Source: Guillardia theta CCMP2712
Taxonomy: Eukaryota; Protista; Cryptophyta
Direction: 5' to 3'
Assembly: GCF_000315625.1 (NCBI RefSeq)
Contig: NW_005434604.1
Coordinates: forward strand, 62,001 to 126,000
Length of the DNA stretch: 64,000 nucleotides
Part shown: positions 7 through 64,000 of the stretch, one piece after another
Layout of the letters: each line of letters starts with the position of its first letter
Position numbering within the stretch: the stretch's first letter is position 1
Made by a program: the position numbers and the translations under genes
The notes under the pieces: generated by a model
Seen by the model: only the letters and a program-made list of their open reading frames with translations
What the model was told of the DNA's origin: nothing
The model's database searches: none

Positions 7-1383
7 TCAGCAATCTCCCTCCAACAAGAAACTTACATCATCCCTCGCTCGCATCAAGGCTTCATAAGCGTTGTCTCGTTCCAGCATGGCCTGTCCTCCA
101 CTCTCAGGCTCTTTCCCGACGATTCTTCCATCACCTTCTTGTTCTCTGAAATCTGCAACGACAACCTTTCCTCTAGCGCCTGTCGCCATTTGAGACGACC
201 GGAAGGGCTGGAGGGGGAGGACGGGGAGGAGGAGGAGGAGGGGAAGGAGGAAGGGGGGGGTCCATGAAGTCACCTGGATCACTCCAGCCGCCTTAACTTT
301 GTGCTGATAGAAGTTCTCCTCGGTCTGTTTGCACCTTGTTTCCGCTTCCTGCAAGACGGCTGACTGAGCAAAAGTCCTGTGAAATACACCAACCTCTCCT
401 CCTGCTCCTGCTCCTGCTTCTGTCCCTCACTTCTCCTCTCCTCTATCCCTTTCTCCTCCTCCTCGCTCCTCCTCCTCCTCCTCCTCGCTTCTCCTCTTCA
501 TTCTGGCCTTTCGTCATCATTCTCTTCCTCCATGACCTCCAACTTCTCGGTGAGCTCGTAGACTTTGGCTGACGTTTGCACGCGGACTTCAGTCTCTCGT
601 GAAGCCATCCATTGCAAAGTGTCGTTTTGCTTCCTCAGGCGCAGATTTTCCTGCAGATAGACAGGAGGGAAGAGGGGATGGGAGGGGAGGGGAGAGGAGA
701 GAAGGGGAGAGAGGAGAGGAGAGGAGAGGAGAGGAGAGGAGAGGAGAGGAGAGGAGAGGAGAGGTGGAGAGGAGAGGAGAGGAGGGGAGATGGGAGTAGA
801 GTAGAGGGGAGGAGGATCGTAAGATTACATAACACGTGAAGCATTTCTCGCACATCAAGAACGGTTGAATGTTGCATTCCAAAGTTCATCGCGTTTGCTG
901 AGAAGTTCTCCTGCGAGCAAGTGAGAGCAGCGAGTGGAAATACAAACTCCTTCCACCTCCTTCGTCTGCTTGAGAGTCTCTATGAGAGAAATTTGCTGCT
1001 CACTTTCCAGCTTGCGACGGGCAAGCTGGGTTTCAAGGTCCTGACGGGAAGTCAGGGAGGGAGAAGGAGGGAGGGAGGAAGCAATGCTGGGAGGGAGGTT
1101 GAGTAGGGTAGAGAGGGAGACGGAAGGGGGAGAGTAGAGAGGATAGGAGAAGGGCTGAGAGAGAAAGAGGAGGATGTAAAAACAGAAGTAAAGGGAGGAA
1201 AGGGCCCCTTGTGCCGCAGTCAGGAGGGAGGGCAGGAGAGAGAGCATGCATAGCGAGCGAGGTACTAGAACAGCAGGGGCAAGAAGATCAGGAGTAAGAG
1301 ACCTTCACTCTCTCCCTCGCTCTCTCCGTGTCCTTCAGCATACTTGACTGCAGCAGCACTCGCCGGTCAGAGCACGCTACAAC

Positions 1384-1436
<53 letters not shown>

Positions 1437-4002
1437 TCCTCTAGCAAGCAGGATCGACTGGTCTCTCCAGGAGTGTCTTGCCTGCATTTGGACGGCACTC
1501 CTCAGCTGATCTTCGAGCTGCGCGATGCGGCGGTGGGAGAAGTCGTCCTGGTTCGACTTGAGCTCCCTCTCGTGCCGCGCCTTCATCCCCTCCATGTCCC
1601 TCGTTAGACTGTCTCGCTCCTCCTTCAGCTCCTGCTGGGAGCTCAACGGCCAAGACGCCATCATCGGACGGCAAGCTCACCTCGTAGCGCGATCGGAGGA
1701 TGTTGAGCTGTGACATGAGGCTGGAGCGATCCTCGGAAGAAGACTGAAGGACCGGCGCCACGGCCTCCTTAACGATCTCATACAGCTTTTCTTTCTGCTG
1801 GTTTCGAGTAAGCTGCAAGCTCAAGATCATGTCGTCTGTCATGATGTTTTTGGTCCTGAAAGTCGAAGACCAAGATAAGTGGACCGCAAACAAGAAGAGA
1901 AGGAGGAAAGATTGGAGGAAGGGAGGGAGGGAGGGAGGGAGGGAGGGAGGGAGGGAGGGAGGGAGGGAGGGAGGGAGGGAGGGAGGGATGGAGGAGGATC
2001 AGGTATCTTTGACGGAGAGTTTAAAGGTCTCACTGCTCCAGCGGGCTTTGGAAACCAACGTGAACTCCTTGCATCAATCCGTTTCTTGCAAGTCCCTCGT
2101 CCTTCCTGCCCATCGCTCCATCCTCCCGAAGATTGCTCTGCAGCCCGCGTATCGAGATCTTGTTCACCGGATACATGGGTGCCCCTTGGAACGGATGCGA
2201 CGAAGCAGGCGCCTCCTGCGTTTTCGTGCTTCAGTCTTCTGCTGCTCTGGCCCTCAAGAACGACACACCTGAGGGACGTCTTGGGCAATGAGCTGGGGAT
2301 GAAGTTCGTTCAGCAACCTGTCGATCTCTTCATCGAGCCCGGTGCTTCCAGAGCTTGCGGAATTGGTCAGAGGAGGGAAGAAAGGGAGGAAAGGGAGGAT
2401 ATGTAGTAGAGGGAGGAGAGGATCGAAGTTGCCAGAGCGATGAAGAAATAGCTTCACACGGGTTCAATGCAATCAAAGGGAATGGAAGATTTCGTCAACC
2501 TCAAGTCACCAACATCATCATTTGATCGTCACGATCGTGATACACGTTCGTTCTCACCTCAGCCTATACTGCATCGCATCCTGAGTCATGATGCTCGACG
2601 AGCCGCTCGACCGCACGTCAAAGTGGTTCTCATGTCCCATGACCATGTTGTGCGAGACGTTCCAGCCCTCCCTCTCCATCTCGTTGGCAGCCGGCGGGAC
2701 GGCAGGAGCAGCACGATAATCCATCAGCCCCCTCGGAATCCGCGAGAACGTCGGGCCCTGGGCATACCCGCCCTTGCTGCGGAGCTGCTCGAGATCGTCC
2801 TCAAGACGCATCCTGTCTTCCTCAATCTGATGGAGGAAGCATGAGAAAGGATTGGGATAAAGGAGATGCAGAAAGAAGGGGGAGGACGGGGGATGGGGAG
2901 GCAGGTCAGAACGGCAGACTCGATCTCCTTTCCTCCTCTTACCTGACGTCTGGCTGCGCTCATCGCATCCTCAGGCAGCCCCTGTTGATCTCTTTTGACC
3001 TCCTGTGACGACAAGGGCGTGTTTGACCGGGAGGTCAGTTTGTGAACCCCCGAGTTGTAGAGCAGGTCCTTGGAAGACAGAAGATCTTTCACGAGACCCT
3101 TGAAGTCATCGAAGTGAAGCAACCTAAGAGTAACAATGGAGATCAGTGAGGTAAAGACTTTGGAATGCAATCCCATGGAAACAACAATCAAGACATGGTT
3201 TCAAGAAAGCACAGTAGTTTCAAGAAAGTTTCAAGAAATCACAACCTGAACCTCCATACCGCATTTATCAAAGGGTTCAACACAGATTTTGAATCAGAAT
3301 TGCATTCATGCATGGAGGTAGGGACATTCTGCAAGATCACCGTTTCTCCCGATCAAGCTTTGGGTTGCTGTTGAAGGCTTTCACTGCATCTTCATCGGTT
3401 ATCACCTGCGGAAGCAAGTTCTTGATTCTCAGCAGCTCCATGAACTGATTCTGATTGATGAAAGAGCTGTATCGGTTGACTTGAGGAGCTGATGACGACC
3501 TTTGAACGTTGACCATGTCTGCACCTCGAGTCTCGCTGTAAAATCCTCCACCCCCATATCCATTGCTCATGCTTGCGCCTGCAAGGTTTTCGGCATTTTT
3601 GTGCAAAATTGCCTCAGCCTGGCTTGTGATGCCATTGTTAAGAGGCTCACGTGTGAAAGTTTCTGCAGCATGTGCGACTTCATTCAGACCCTGCTGAGCG
3701 CTATCCGCTGTTCCATCCTTCTGTTCAAAGGTGTTCAACAGGTTGAGGAAATTCATCCTCCTCTGATGCTTTTCCTCCGCACTCCTTCTTACCATTGATT
3801 CAGGCCTGCTACTCCCACTCTCATCAGACATCCGCTGTGCAGTTTTCATAGCACTTCTTTCATCCATTGCAGCTTGCGCTGGCGCCCCCTCCATCCCTTC
3901 TTGCTCCATTCTGTCCTCCTCTGACAACCAACTCTCGTCCAAGGAGCTCAGTCCGTGATCCTCGGAGTACCCGCCCGCTTCCTCTGCCATCATCGCAGAC
4001 AT
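7..4002 (-). CDS. Multi-exon coiled-coil protein with an EF-hand/p25alpha-like segment; 3' end probably outside the window
   Basis: First exon 4002-~3340 (MSAMMAEEAGG...LLPQVITDEDAVKAFN). Further spliced exons read LHFDDFKGLVKDLL, IRLEDDLEQLRSKGG, ELKEERDSLTRDMEGMKARHERELK, DLETQLARRKLESEQQISL, EAETRCKQTEENFYQHK. E/K/Q/L-rich heptad composition. Confidence 0.7.
1386..1433. repeat. (CAG)n tract in an intron; other simple repeats include (GAGAG)n ~705-765, (GGGA)n 1921-1988 and 14360-14447, (GCCCTC)n 8622-8695
   Basis: Direct inspection. Confidence 0.95.
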
Positions 4003-58368: not shown

Positions 58369-58647
58369 TCACATGACGCTGACTCGTTTGAACTTGAAGG
58401 TCTCACTAAAGTGCGGCAGCGCTAGCCTCTGCTTGTCAAAGCTGTCATGGCATGCCAATGGTAAGACGTCAAAGTCGGTTGCAGCCGAGGGCTGAAGTTC
58501 AAGGCAATAGGGGTGGAAGACGTGTGGGATATCATCATGAAGTAGCCACGTGACGGTGCCGATTAAGATTTGGATCGACGCAGAGAGGAAAGAGCCGGTA
58601 AGTATGAACCCGGCGAGCAGTGCCTGCACAAGGGCCTGCCAGAGCAT
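58369..58647 (-). CDS. 92-aa small membrane protein, diverged paralog of the array ORF
   Basis: Shares WLL.DD, D.LP.AC, FD..RL..PHF..TFK.KRV.V and the stop position with the + strand array ORFs, despite obvious DNA divergence. Confidence 0.75.
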   Translation of the reverse strand: MLWQALVQALLAGFILTGSFLSASIQILIGTVTWLLHDDIPHVFHPYCLELQPSAATDFDVLPLACHDSFDKQRLALPHFSETFKFKRVSVM

Positions 58648-58911
58648 GGAGCTGCAGCGAGGCGCTGAATCAATCTCCGGATGTATCTGGGGGAGGGGAT
58701 AAAGACCATTAAGAGTCTCCCGGCATCAAGGAAGGGGTAGACGAGGGCAGGAGGAAACCAACGACGATCCCGGATGCCAGTCAAAACCTATTTTGACCAG
58801 GTAAAAACGCGACGTTTGAAAAAGACAGTCAGATAAACCCTAAAACCCCTCCCAACAACTTCATTGCTATCTGATCAACTTCTGCAGCTTCCAGTCCTTA
58901 CTATCCCTGCC

Positions 58912-59250
58912 ATGTCCTCCTCCTCCCACGACTGGCAAGCCTCTCCCGTCCCTTCTCTCCCTTCTCTCCCCTCCCCCTCCCGCATGCCTGCCCACGCCGC
59001 CCTCCTGCTCCGCCTCTCCCTTGCGCTGGCCGTGGCTTGCCTCGCGAGCCTGGTCAGCGGCCTTGTCTGGCTCCTCCAAGACGACGACTTGGAGTCTCCC
59101 GTCACCCTGGACTCTCGTCTGGCGCTCCCGTCGGCGCCCCGGCTGGATCTCCTGCCGGCGGCATGCCAGGCAGGCGGCTTCGACAGGCGGAGGCTGCTGC
59201 AGCCGCACTTCGGTCAGACCTTCAAGGTCAAGCGCGTCGGCGTCCTCTAG
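58912..59250 (+). CDS. 112-aa single-TM protein, array copy 1
   Basis: MSSSSHDWQ...ALLLRLSLALAVACLASLVSGLVWLLQDD...PHFGQTFKVKRVGVL; AATAAA ~50 nt after the stop; homology to the 58369-58647 paralog. Confidence 0.75.
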   Translation: MSSSSHDWQASPVPSLPSLPSPSRMPAHAALLLRLSLALAVACLASLVSGLVWLLQDDDLESPVTLDSRLALPSAPRLDLLPAACQAGGFDRRRLLQPHFGQTFKVKRVGVL

Positions 59251-59796
59251 ACGACGGGAGAGAGGGGCTGTGTAGAGTAGCGAAGCATGTATGTAGAGTA
59301 AATAAAGAAGCACGACTTTGAGCTGTCTTCTCGTGTGTCCTGGCAGCGTCGGGGGAGGAGGTGGAGTGCTGGCAGGCAGGCTCTAGCCTGTCAGCCACGA
59401 CCAGGGGGAGCAGAGGAAACGTCTGGACCGACGAGCATCGCTCTCCGGAGCCTTGCTCCATGCTGTCTTCTGAGTGGGAATAGCCTTGGAGTCTCAAGAG
59501 CTCCTCATGAGACAGCAGGTGAGGCTGGAGCGACAAAGCTCCCTGCCTCTGCCTCTCTCAGGCGCGTCCCGGTCCCGCCCAAGAGCCAACAGTCTCAGCC
59601 ATGGTCGAGAACGCACGCAAAGGGTGCCGCATGCCTTGAGCGAGGAAACGCAGCGATACGACCGCACGTGTAGCAACATAGGCCATGCGGTCTAGCGCAG
59701 TGCTCTCAGCCTCTCCCAGGCGGTACAGCGTCCTATCAGCAGATACCAGTCTTTCATTCATTACCAACCATCGCCTCCTACATACACCCTCTCGTC

Positions 59797-60102
59797 CTAT
59801 CTTACTACCCTCCTGTCCCTCGTCGCTCTGGATGGCCGCTGGCTCCATGCTGGCTCACAGCTTGGCTCCTCTGCCCCGCCGCTGCTCCCCTCCTTGACCT
59901 CCGTCGCCCCCATTCCCCCCGCTCCTGCCGTCCTTCCCAGCCGCACCCACTCCCCCGTCGCCCCCATCACGGCCTTGCCCGACTCGATGAGGCGGATAGA
60001 TGCCTGCAGGCATGCCAGCTGCTTGACCCGCAAGGGCGCTGGGCTGTCGGGGCAGGGGCGGCGGTCGGCGGGCGGCGAGTCGACGCAAGTATCGCACGGC
60101 AT
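59797..60102 (-). CDS. Possible second gene of the repeat unit, 101 aa (copies at 61494-61799 and 63126-63431)
   Basis: MPCDTCVDSPPADRRPCPDSPAPLRVKQLACLQASIRLIESGKAVM... The ATG follows an acceptor-like pyrimidine tract/ACACAG. Open in all three copies, but the copies are too young for this to prove coding. Confidence 0.35.
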   Translation of the reverse strand: MPCDTCVDSPPADRRPCPDSPAPLRVKQLACLQASIRLIESGKAVMGATGEWVRLGRTAGAGGMGATEVKEGSSGGAEEPSCEPAWSQRPSRATRDRRVVR

Positions 60103-60608
60103 GTCGCTGTGTACAAGGGATGCCAAGAATGAGAGGAGCGGCAGACGCCAAGGAGATGAGACGAAGGGGGGATGTTTACTCCAGGCACGGCTGTCATGAT
60201 CAGGCATGCTTGTCCCATCGAAACATCGCGATTGGCGGTCACTTGTTGACATGCGACTAGGCCAAGCGATCTGTTTTTTTCGAGCTACATCGCAATCCAC
60301 AACGGCGTCCGGACTTCTTTCCTGTCAGCAAGATCTCCGACTGATATCCATCCATTGCGGTCGATCGTCTTCCGGCTTCAGTCCCATCGAATCGTCGCCC
60401 TTCCCAGTCACCCGCCGCCGTGCCAGACCCGGAAGCGCTGCGCTTCGCCAAAAGATCCTATTCGGTCCCCCCCCGCTCCCCCTTACAAGATCGCGCACCT
60501 CCCTTCCCTATCCTCCCCATTGCCCCCCACCTCATCAAACGCGCTTGAGCAAGCCATCACTCGATACCCGACATCTTGCCCTACCCGCGCCTCCTCCCCT
60601 CCACCGAC

Positions 60609-60947
60609 ATGTCCTCCTCCTCCCACGACTGGCAAGCCTCCCCCGTCCGTCCCTTCCCTTCTCTCCCCTCCCCCTCCCGCATACCTGCACACGCCGCCCT
60701 CCTGCTCCGCCTCTCCCTTGCGCTGGCCGTGGCTTGCCTCGCGAGCCTGGTCAGCGGCCTTGTCTGGCTCCTCCAAGACGACGACTTGGAGTCTCCCGTC
60801 ACCCTGGACTCTCGTCTGGCGCTCCCGTCGGGGCCCCGGCTGGATCTCCTGCCGGCGGCATGCCAGGCAGGCGGCTTCGACAGGCGGAGGCTGCTGCAGC
60901 CGCACTTCGGTCAGACCTTCAAGGTCAAGCGCGTCGGCGTCCTCTAG
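60609..60947 (+). CDS. 112-aa single-TM protein, array copy 2
   Basis: Intact near-identical copy. Confidence 0.75.
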   Translation: MSSSSHDWQASPVRPFPSLPSPSRIPAHAALLLRLSLALAVACLASLVSGLVWLLQDDDLESPVTLDSRLALPSGPRLDLLPAACQAGGFDRRRLLQPHFGQTFKVKRVGVL

Positions 60948-62239
60948 ACGACGGGAGAGAGGGGCTGTGTAGAGTAGCGAAGCATGTATGTAGAGTAAAT
61001 AAAGAAGCACGACTTTGAGCTGTCTTCTCGTGTGTCCTGGCAGCGTCGGGGGAGGAGGTGGAGAGCTGGCAGGCAGGCTCTAGCCTGTCAGCCACGACCA
61101 GGGGGAGCAGAGGAAACGTCTGGGCCGACGAGCATCGCTATCCGGAGCCTTGCTCCATGCTGTCTTCTGAGTGGGAATAGCCTTGGAGTCTCAAGAGCTC
61201 CTCATGAGACAGCAGGTGAGGCTGGAGCGACAAAGCTCCCTGCCTTTGCCTCTCTCAGGCGCGTCCCGGTCCCGCCCAAGAGCCAACAGTCACAGCCATG
61301 GTCGAGAACGCACGCAAAGGGTGCCGCATGCCTTGAGCGAGGAAACGCAGCGATACGACCGCACGTGTAGCAACATAGGCCATGCGGTCTAGCGCAGTGC
61401 TCTCAGCCTCTCCCAGGCGGTACAGCGTCCTATCAGCAGATACCAGTCTTTCATTCATTACCAACCATCGCCTCCTACATACACCCTCTCGTCCTATCTT
61501 ACTACCCTCCTGTCCCTCGTCGCTCTGGATGGCCGCTGGCTCCATGCTGGCTCACAGCTTGGCTCCTCTGCCCCGCCGCTGCTCCCCTCCTTGACCTCCG
61601 TCGCCCCCATTCCCCCCGCTCCTGCCGTCCTTCCCAGCCGCACCCACTCCCCCGTCGCCCCCATCACGGCCTTGCCCGACTCGATGAGGCGGATAGATGC
61701 CTGCAGGCATGCCAGCTGCTTGGCCCACAAGGGCGCTGGGCTGTCGGGGCAGGGGCGGCGGTCGGCGGGCGGCGAGTCGACGCAAGTATCGCACGGCATG
61801 TCGCTGTGTACAAGGGATGCCAAGAATGAGAGGAGCGGCAGACGCCAAGGAGATGAGACGAAGGGGGGATGTTTACTCCAGGCACGGCTGTCATGATCAG
61901 GCATGCTTGTCCCATCGAAACATCGCGATTGGCGGTCACTTGTTGACATGCGACTAGGCCAAGCGATCTGTTTTTCGAGCTACCTTGCAATCCTCAACGG
62001 CATCCGGGACTTACTCCCATCGAATCGTCGCCCTTCCCAGTCACCCGCCGCCGTGCCAGACCCGGAAGCGCTGCGCTTCGCCAAAAGATCCTATTCGGCC
62101 CCCCCGTTCTCCCTTACAAGATCGCGCACCTCCCTTCCCTATCCTCCCCATCGCCCCCCACCTCATCAAACGCGCTTGAGCAAGCCATCACTCGATACCC
62201 GACATCTTGCCCTGACCCCGCCTTCTCTCCTCCACCTAC

Positions 62240-62578
62240 ATGTCCTCCTCCTCCCACGACTGGCAAGCCTCTCTCGTCCGTCCCTTCCCTTCTCTTCCCT
62301 CCCCCTCCCGCATGCCTGCCCACGCCGTCCTCCTGCTCCGCCTCTCCCTTGCGCTGGCCGTGGCTTGCCTCGCGAGCCTGGTCAGCGGCCTTGTCTGGCT
62401 CCTCCAAGACGACGACTTGGAGTCTCCCGTCACCCTGGACTCTCGTCTGGCGCTCCCGTCGGGGCCCCGGCTGGATCTCCTGCCGGCGGCATGCCAGGCA
62501 GGCGGCTTCGACAGGCGGAGGCTGCTGCAGCCGCACTTCGGTCAGACCTTCAAGGTCAAGCGCGTCGGCGTCCTCTAG
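62240..62578 (+). CDS. 112-aa single-TM protein, array copy 3
   Basis: Intact near-identical copy. Confidence 0.75.
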   Translation: MSSSSHDWQASLVRPFPSLPSPSRMPAHAVLLLRLSLALAVACLASLVSGLVWLLQDDDLESPVTLDSRLALPSGPRLDLLPAACQAGGFDRRRLLQPHFGQTFKVKRVGVL

Positions 62579-64000
62579 ACGACGGGGAGAGAGGGGCTGT
62601 GTAGAGTAGCGAAGCATGTATGTAGAGTAAATAAAGAAGCACGACTTTGAGCTGTCTTCTCGTGTGTCCTGGCAGCGTCGGGGGAGGAGGTGGAGTGCTG
62701 GCAGGCAGGCTCTAGCCTGTCAGCCACGACCAGGGGGAGCAGAGGAAACGTCTGGACCGACGAGCATCGCTATCCGGAGCCTTGCTCCATGCTGTCTTCT
62801 GAGTGGGAATAGCCTTGGAGTCTCAAGAGCTCCTCATGAGACAGCAGGTGAGGCTGGAGCGACAAAGCTCCCTGCCTCTGCCTCTCTCAGGCGCGTCCCG
62901 GTCCCGCCCAAGAGCCAACAGTCTCAGCCATGGTCGAGAACGCACGCAAAGGGTGCCGCATGCCTTGAGCGAGGAAACGCAGCGATACGACCGCACGTGT
63001 AGCAACATAGGCCATGCGGTCTAGCGCAGTGCTCTCAGCCTCTCCCAGGCGGTACAGCGTCCTATCAGCAGATACCAGTCTTTCATTCATTACCAACCAT
63101 CGCCTCCTACATACACCCTCTCGTCCTATCTTACTACCCTCCTGTCCCTCGTCGCTCTGGATGGCCGCTGGCTCCATGCTGGCTCACAGCTTGGCTCCTC
63201 TGCCCCGCCGCTGCTCCCCTCCTTGACCTCCGTCGCCCCCATTCCCCCCGCTCCTGCCGTCCTTCCCAGCCGCACCCACTCCCCCGTCGCCCCCATCACG
63301 GCCTTGCCCGACTCGATGAGGCGGATAGATGCCTGCAGGCATGCCAGCTGCTTGGCCCGCGAGGGCGCTGGGCTGTCGGGGCAGGGGCGGCGGTCTGCGG
63401 GCGGCGAGTCGACGCAAGTATCGCACGGCATGTCGCTGTGTACAAGGGAAGCCAAGAATGAGAGGAGCGGCAGACGCCAAGGAGATGAGACGAAGGGGGG
63501 ATGTTTACTCCAGGCACGGCTGTCATGATCAGGCATGCTTGTCCCATCGAAACATCGCGATTGGCGGTCACTTGTTGACATGCGACTAGGCCAAGCGATC
63601 TGTTTTTTTCGAGCTACCTTGCAATCCACAACGGCGTCCGGACTTCTTTCCTGTCAGCAAGATCTCCGACTGATATCCATCCATTGCGGTCGATCGTCTT
63701 CCGGCTTCAGTCCCATCGAATCGTCGCGCTTCCCAGTCACCCGCCGCCGTGCCAGACCCGGAAGCGCTGCGCTTCGCCAAAAGATCCTATTCGGTCCCCC
63801 CCCGCTCCCCCTTACAAGATCGCGCACCTCCCTTCCCTATCCTCCCCATTGCCCCCCACCTCATCAAACGCGCTTGAGCAAGCCATCACTCGATACCCGA
63901 CATCTTGCCCTACCCGCGCCTCCTCCCCTCCACCGACATGTCCTCCTCCTCCCACGACTGGCAAGCCTCCCCCGTCCGTCCCTTCCCTTCTCTCCCCTCC

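Follow-up and report, generated by a model that had tools for sequence, protein, structure and literature searches.

The window analysed here is a stretch of 64,000 nucleotides (nt) from the cryptophyte Guillardia theta CCMP2712 (assembly of 87.1 Mb in 669 contigs; contig NW_005434604.1, labelled C70 below, forward-strand positions 62,001 to 126,000), and from position 58912 to its end it carries a tandem array of two small, unrelated genes. Every repeat unit is a two-gene module, with a gene of family A, coding for a small protein with one predicted membrane helix, on the plus strand and a gene of family B on the minus strand. A diverged family-A paralog, A', stands beside the array. The features of the locus are as follows, the 112-amino-acid (aa) length of the plus-strand open reading frames (ORFs) being counted from the conserved methionine.

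58369..58647, minus strand: A', diverged family-A paralog of 92 aa, head to head with the first array copy
58648..58911: divergent spacer of 264 bp between the start codons of A' and A1, a putative bidirectional promoter
58912..59250, plus strand: A1, array copy 1, single-helix protein gene, 112 aa
59301..59306, plus strand: AATAAA, 51 nt past the A1 stop and with ATGTAG before it, a candidate poly(A) signal
59797..60252, minus strand: B1, family B, longest ORF from a methionine 151 aa; likely start at the methionine of M-P-C-D-T-C-V at 60102
60609..60947, plus strand: A2, array copy 2, 112 aa
61494..61949, minus strand: B2, family B; its short form begins at 61799
~61635-61724, minus strand: conserved core of B2 (A-K-Q-L-A-C-L-Q-A-S-I-R-L-I-E-S-G-K ... 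G-A-T-G-E)
61942..62010, plus strand: non-coding block 230-300 nt upstream of an A start codon, a candidate promoter or 5' untranslated element of the A module
62240..62578, plus strand: A3, array copy 3, 112 aa
63126..63581, minus strand: B3, family B
63938..64000, plus strand: A4, array copy 4, start only; truncated by the window end, complete in the genome

Past the window end, the assembly completes A4 and continues with another B and then a fifth A copy, where the array stops. The array is G+C-rich (62%, against 51-58% in the flanks). A sequence-only reading of this DNA had described a 92-aa and a 112-aa ORF facing away from each other about 265 bp apart, and an amplification of the plus-strand copy at least fourfold in units of about 1.7 kb. 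The coordinates were right, the spacing being 264 bp, and the amplification is real: the assembly holds five copies with a period of 1.63-1.70 kb, and each array A gene has one AATAAA 51-52 nt past its stop (at 59301, 60998 and 62630 in the window). The amplified unit, however, is an A/B module and not a single gene, and the locus is one of a family of about 45 genes. These genome-wide members, the minus-strand B gene in every unit and an N-terminal motif, S-S-H-D-W, had all been overlooked.

We searched all six frames of the assembly with the 112-aa protein, which gave 46 places, and with a profile of 17 members, which gave 47; around 36 of the 47 matches cover the whole profile in a single open frame without stops. 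Family A thus is a set of about 45 intronless, nuclear and unstudied genes, spread over at least 16 contigs. Tandem arrays lie on C70 (five copies), C81 (six copies, period 2.0 kb), C160 (three) and C111 (two), inverted pairs on C167, C144 and C13, and the other members are single copies. The proteins are about 105-140 aa long and share one layout: a methionine and a Ser-rich Ser/Thr start leading into S-S-H-D-W, a variable Pro/Ser-rich stretch, a hydrophobic stretch of some 25-30 residues that passes straight into an acidic patch (W-L-L-[QE]-D-D or E-E-E-E), a linker of variable sequence, and a C-terminal motif rich in Phe and strongly basic, G-F-D-[KR]-x-[KR]-[ML]-L-x-P-x-F-G-Q-T-F-K-x-x-R-V-G, whose end lies 3-7 residues short of the stop. 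Four residues, F90, D91, F100 and R108, never vary in the alignments. Every window copy, and A' as well, has the helix, the acidic patch and the F-D...P-x-F...T-F-K-x-x-R signature near the stop, with profile E-values of 1.7e-21 or lower.

The A ORFs are real genes, because their third codon positions vary most, AATAAA is enriched behind them and relatives occur in Hanusia phi. In the C-terminal core, 23 distinct DNA sequences give entropies of 0.69/0.59/1.09 at codon positions 1/2/3. The sequence-only reading had proposed protein-level selection on the C-terminal motif, and the ratio of nonsynonymous to synonymous divergence (dN/dS) bears this out: it is 0.08-0.4 in many pairs for the C-terminal block, with synonymous divergence saturated (dS 0.4-1.8). 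Over the whole protein, dN/dS is 0.4-0.9, the linkers being nearly free to change and hard to align. Start and stop positions are conserved, and of 38 distinct regions downstream of the stop, 24 have an AATAAA at a distance of 24-131 nt, whereas only 2% of random windows of 250 nt contain AATAAA. It is usually preceded by ATGTAG or TGTA. Beyond family A, the succession ATGTAG(A), then AATAAA or AATGAA within ~5-40 nt, recurs past the stops of both A and B genes (e.g., 59285-59306 in the window) and looks like a general 3'-end signal of G. theta nuclear genes. On C74 (225000-234000), a divergent A subfamily carries the motif F-D-K-R-K-L-L-R-A-E-F-G-E-T-F-K-V-R-R-A-S and runs 8 residues further; its tail has the R-R-x-S look of a kinase site, and one copy contains an in-frame TAG.

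This evidence bears on the reading that the ORFs are non-functional, that is, chance frames or decaying pseudogenes in GC-rich repeats or in a transposon remnant. The GC-richness of the array, its many overlapping spurious ORFs in all frames, the almost neutral evolution of the linkers, the very long branch of A' and its want of an AATAAA, and the fact that the window's copies figure in no public protein set would all fit such a view. Against it, some 36 of the 47 copies keep the full frame with conserved start and stop despite saturated DNA divergence, and the excess of third-position variation, the AATAAA enrichment and the members in a second genus point the same way; we consider non-functionality very improbable and largely refuted. 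A transposable-element fragment was rejected: 54-64 kb of the window contains no inverted repeats, neither terminal repeats nor a transposase or reverse-transcriptase domain was found, and homology between arrays is limited to the gene-sized A module of about 0.8 kb. A spliced-leader RNA gene array was rejected too. Such arrays in cryptomonads carry a 17-nt leader followed by a GT donor (PMC5619915), and no match to the leader with up to 2 mismatches was found in the window or in 51 fetched loci.

A further alternative makes the A ORF a single exon within a larger spliced gene, with intron sequence supplying the apparent stop. Genes of G. theta are as a rule rich in introns, and one Hanusia protein (P0013) continues for 120 residues past the motif. 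Yet the methionine start and a stop 3-7 codons past the motif recur in almost all members, AATAAA follows within ~50 nt of the stop, there is no GT donor consensus at the stop, the next conserved coding block lies on the opposite strand, and annotated G. theta models and a second Hanusia protein (P0010) end at the same place. This alternative is largely excluded and, of all those weighed here, the least credible.

The relatives of family A are few. A profile search of 1.84 billion representative proteins, run with no length filter, returned only 13, all short; every named one comes from G. theta or H. phi, the others being ENA or JGI sequences without a name, in agreement with the lineage restriction that had been suggested. 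No longer protein among these representatives carries the A motif as a domain. Members already on record are GUITHDRAFT_115064, _119337, _155721, _118367, _117490 and _117491, together with EukProt Hanusia phi P058525 (E 1e-21 to 1e-32), and members translated from the assembly reproduce GUITHDRAFT proteins such as _155721 and _119337 letter for letter. These hypothetical proteins have the same motifs, length and helix as the A proteins of the window, but the entries come without name, domain or publication, and the five array copies and A' are not among them. A literature search by locus tag and by topic yielded nothing.

Two proteins of the EukProt Hanusia phi set, which we take to be derived from an MMETSP transcriptome, belong to family A. 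The first, P0010, shares 60% identity with the corresponding G. theta protein and keeps the N-terminal motif, the helix, the acidic patch and the C-terminal motif, the linkers not being retained. The second, P0013 (226 aa), starts with 106 residues of a normal A protein followed by 120 unrelated residues, an extension that may reflect read-through or faulty assembly, or else a genuine longer protein. PMC5619915 draws on transcriptomic sequence from this species.

Domain and structure databases were equally silent, as the sequence-only reading had expected in recognising no known domain. For A, A' and B, no Pfam family appeared even at E up to 10, and NCBIfam and PHROGs gave nothing significant (only E above 0.07). 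The closest PDB sequences scored E 0.074 with the A profile and E 0.85 with the B profile, neither a match, and the ESM Atlas held no match for A or for a B member. Rfam over 58-64 kb of the window gave no match, and scans of viral contigs found no relative of A or B.

Family B came to light by comparing the C70 unit with other A loci, which showed conserved DNA outside the A ORF. One such block, at 61648-61756, has counterparts of 80-83% identity on C78, C4 and C111. Its reading as a non-coding element was ruled out by the synonymous third-position variation of the minus strand (entropy 0.46/0.35/0.99 at codon positions 1/2/3 of the B core) and by the frame being open in all copies. The protein probably starts with M-[TP]-C and continues through a Pro/Ser-rich stretch to a core, P-S-R-x-K-Q-L-x-x-L-x-x-S-I-R-L-I ... 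A-T-G-E-x-x-x-L, followed by an acidic tail or by an immediate stop. At least 139 six-frame matches in the genome encode proteins of 58-110 aa, almost none of them annotated, and most stand in tandem or alternating-strand arrays, many of which are free of A (C20, C62, C274, C79 and C217). No obvious second conserved ORF stood out in the arrays of B alone on C20, C62, C274 and C79. The search for family B, too, led to nothing beyond G. theta, H. phi and ENA records without a name. Its C-terminal domain spans ~35 residues, for which AlphaFold2 predicts a helix and a beta-hairpin (29 residues of the core above a predicted local distance difference test score, pLDDT, of 90); a Foldseek search of this model against PDB gave no match at E 0.001 or better. 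That A and B might be distant homologues was rejected, the hhalign probability being 0.1%. On C78 (188000-193000), two convergent B genes sit in a large palindrome and are flanked by two nearly identical 183-aa ORFs (locus positions 983-1534, minus strand, and 3407-3958, plus strand).

The two families are associated far beyond chance. A on the plus strand alternates with B on the minus strand in all four A tandem arrays (C70, C81, C160 and C111), and a fifth A locus, C13, has a B 1.9 kb downstream, so that B lies within 2 kb at 5 of ~20 A loci, against an estimated ~0.1 by chance with ~139 B genes in 87 Mb. The C70 and C81 arrays allow a closer comparison. Their A genes are mutual closest relatives in the genome (57-62% identity), and the ~0.8 kb over which the loci can be aligned takes in the ORF, a block upstream of it and the 3' end, in which ATGTAGAGTAA(A)TAAA stands. 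The block at 61942..62010 is 78% identical to the matching position upstream of the C81 A genes. The B genes of these two arrays tell a different story, since that of C70 resembles B of C111, C108 and C78, and that of C81 resembles B of C79. The B subtypes thus differ although the A genes are closest relatives; therefore A and B did not simply co-diverge, and either their joining happened repeatedly or one B was exchanged for another. Such joining or exchange either strengthens the case for a functional reason behind the adjacency or reflects a peculiar duplication mechanism.

This pattern invites a view of A and B as a genetic-conflict pair, one membrane-damaging and the other neutralising (A damaging and B neutralising, or the reverse), in a toxin-antidote, killer or antiviral module. 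Conflict would then be the force behind the growth in copy number, the inverted duplications and the rapid turnover of sequence. Both families are confined to Guillardia and Hanusia and evolve rapidly outside short motifs, both have repeatedly expanded as tandem and inverted duplicates, their adjacency is far above chance, and B modules of another subtype have been swapped in beside related A modules. Set against these points, neither protein resembles a known toxin, antitoxin, defence or viral family and viral contigs hold no relative, most A and most B genes occur without each other, and the toxicity of A or B is purely hypothetical. We regard a conflict pair as unlikely.

What the A protein may do can be approached from its predicted structure. 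Each member has a single segment with a 19-residue Kyte-Doolittle mean of 1.6-2.6, and AlphaFold2, run on a 24-sequence alignment, predicts a single helix at residues 27-55 with pLDDT above 90 and disorder in the remainder (mean pLDDT 65.9), in line with the single transmembrane helix of the sequence-only reading. The net charge is -4 to +3 in the 15 residues before the helix (0 to +3 in 16 of 24 members), 0 to -8 in the 15 residues after it, and +2 to +7 over the last 30 residues. By the charge-difference rule for membrane-helix orientation, with the N flank at about 0 to +3 and the C flank at -2 to -8, the N-terminus is predicted to be cytosolic and the C-terminal motif to face the lumen or the outer side.

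An outward-facing C-terminus would also suit a secreted-peptide precursor, in which the helix is a signal anchor, the linker a pro-region, and the conserved last 20-25 residues the source of a signalling or antimicrobial peptide, set free or trimmed at basic sites. The layout of a hydrophobic start, a variable middle and a conserved C-terminal peptide resembles plant and animal peptide precursors; in the [KR]-x-x-R-[VM] element, a basic residue stands three before the invariant Arg with one exception; and A' and one other member start with the hydrophobic segment, much like a signal peptide. In most A proteins, however, that segment starts only at residue 20-57, after a conserved N-terminal motif, and the helix 25-55 residues from the N-terminus, which looks unlike a cleaved signal peptide. 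The upstream basic cluster is [KR]-x-[KR], often K-L-K or K-M-K, and not dibasic, cutting after the invariant Arg would take off just 3-7 residues, and an exon-by-exon search of the genome found no kexin/furin-type convertase P-domain (P_proprotein, PF01483). Among known systems, RALF/CLE-type precursors of plants and prohormones combine, like A, a hydrophobic segment, a fast-evolving middle and a conserved C-terminal peptide with basic residues in multigene families that are often tandem; A differs from them in its conserved pre-helix N-terminus and in its want of a strict dibasic site and of a convertase P-domain found in the genome. A secreted peptide seems to us an improbable account, on a par with the conflict pair.

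Turning to the history of the array, direct-repeat analysis of the window gives A start-to-start spacings of 1697 and 1631-1632 bp, and with the sequence beyond the window included, the unit lengths are 1697/1631/1698/1632 bp, a higher-order structure of period 2. Array copies are 97.6-99.1% identical, as befits the recent tandem amplification claimed earlier. Since units 1 and 3 (99.1%) and units 2 and 4 (98.6%) are most alike, with the remaining pairs at 97.6-98.2%, the last growth step was the duplication of a 3.3-kb two-unit (A-B)2 block; the array is young, and its final expansion proceeded by this dimer. Among the five near-identical A copies, 9 codons differ by an amino-acid change and 4 are synonymous, and all 9 changes fall outside the three conserved motifs. 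Variation among the young copies concentrates in the CT-rich codons 11-36 (60609-60700 in the window and equivalents), at ~10 variable sites per 100 nt against ~2 elsewhere in the unit, and copy 5 has a 3-codon deletion there, which suggests slippage-prone low-complexity coding DNA. An ENA record from an independent assembly (P0001, 109 aa, on a contig of 1555 nt) equals the fifth array copy except for one residue, H6R, and may stem from another strain or be an array copy missing from the reference assembly.

The head-to-head paralog has an older history. A BLASTP comparison aligns A' with the 112-aa protein at 41% identity over 68 residues (E 8e-14), and both carry the shared helix and C-terminal motif that had first linked them. 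A' matches the family profile from the helix onward (profile positions 26-121, E 1.7e-21), begins right at the hydrophobic helix without the S-S-H-D-W motif, and keeps the invariant C-terminal residues; no AATAAA occurs in the 250 nt downstream of its stop. In the tree its end branch is very long (2.06), and its nearest neighbour is the C70 array, without statistical support. A' is an old inverted duplicate, as had been supposed, and is either specialised or decaying. Inverted pairs recur elsewhere in the genome for A and for B.

Our best guess is that A is a membrane-anchored docking protein co-expressed with B, and we would give this account about an even chance; it builds on the findings that the genes are real and the array amplified. 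The A protein would be bitopic, its helix serving solely as an anchor and its two conserved termini acting as short docking motifs. B would be a soluble mini-domain protein, with its helix, beta-hairpin and often acidic tail, and is the likeliest partner of A, since the two genes take turns in each of the four A tandem arrays. By analogy with divergent histone gene pairs, the paired and arrayed layout may give high and balanced expression of both proteins.

Several points weigh against this proposal. For many A genes there is no B within 1.5 kb, and arrays free of A house the majority of B genes; those B genes that do adjoin A fall into three subtypes, even where, as on C70 and C81, the A genes are closest relatives. 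Physical interaction of A with B we infer purely from the adjacency of their genes, and the very basic C-terminal tail is equally compatible with the cytosol, the flank charges being the sole guide to the predicted topology. Outside the motifs, dN/dS is 0.5-0.9, near neutral, in a region where the alignment is uncertain. The locus is unannotated: none of the window's A, A' and B proteins is present in a collection of 15 billion proteins, and public protein sets contain none of the array's ten genes. The putative dosage effect of the sequence-only reading is deduced solely from copy number.

Known systems offer partial parallels to the docking model. FXYD proteins, phospholamban and sarcolipin have, like A, ~100 aa or less, one membrane helix, short motifs by the helix and a basic tail, but they share no sequence similarity with A, whose N-terminal motif lies 20-45 residues from the helix and for which no pump or channel partner is known; the FXYD signature P-F-x-Y-D directly before the helix is absent from the A alignments, and Pfam gives no match. 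The parallel with divergent histone gene pairs concerns organisation only: two small unrelated genes on opposite strands are repeated as a unit with high, balanced output, whereas A and B are unrelated to histones and are often apart.

A bolder form of the same idea is that A and B make up a hitherto undescribed two-part system specific to Guillardia and Hanusia, in which B mini-domain proteins would work with membrane-anchored A and the modules would be re-paired and co-amplified. We hold this to be doubtful, if slightly less so than a conflict pair or a secreted peptide. Were it true, such re-pairing would suit self/non-self recognition, killer-antidote function or antiviral defence more readily than a structure with a housekeeping role.

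Tandem arrays of orphan small-protein families are familiar in kind, and some A members were already on record as unnamed hypothetical proteins. What is new is the A/B module, diagnostic motifs for two orphan families in a model cryptophyte and the size of family B, in a class of proteins, the taxonomically restricted small membrane proteins, that annotation routinely misses. The analysis yields a testable hypothesis, namely that A and B are partners whose dosage is fixed by the array. Should the pair turn out to serve recognition, conflict or defence, it would constitute a new eukaryotic system; should its role be structural, it may mark a feature of the cell that is peculiar to the Guillardia-Hanusia lineage.

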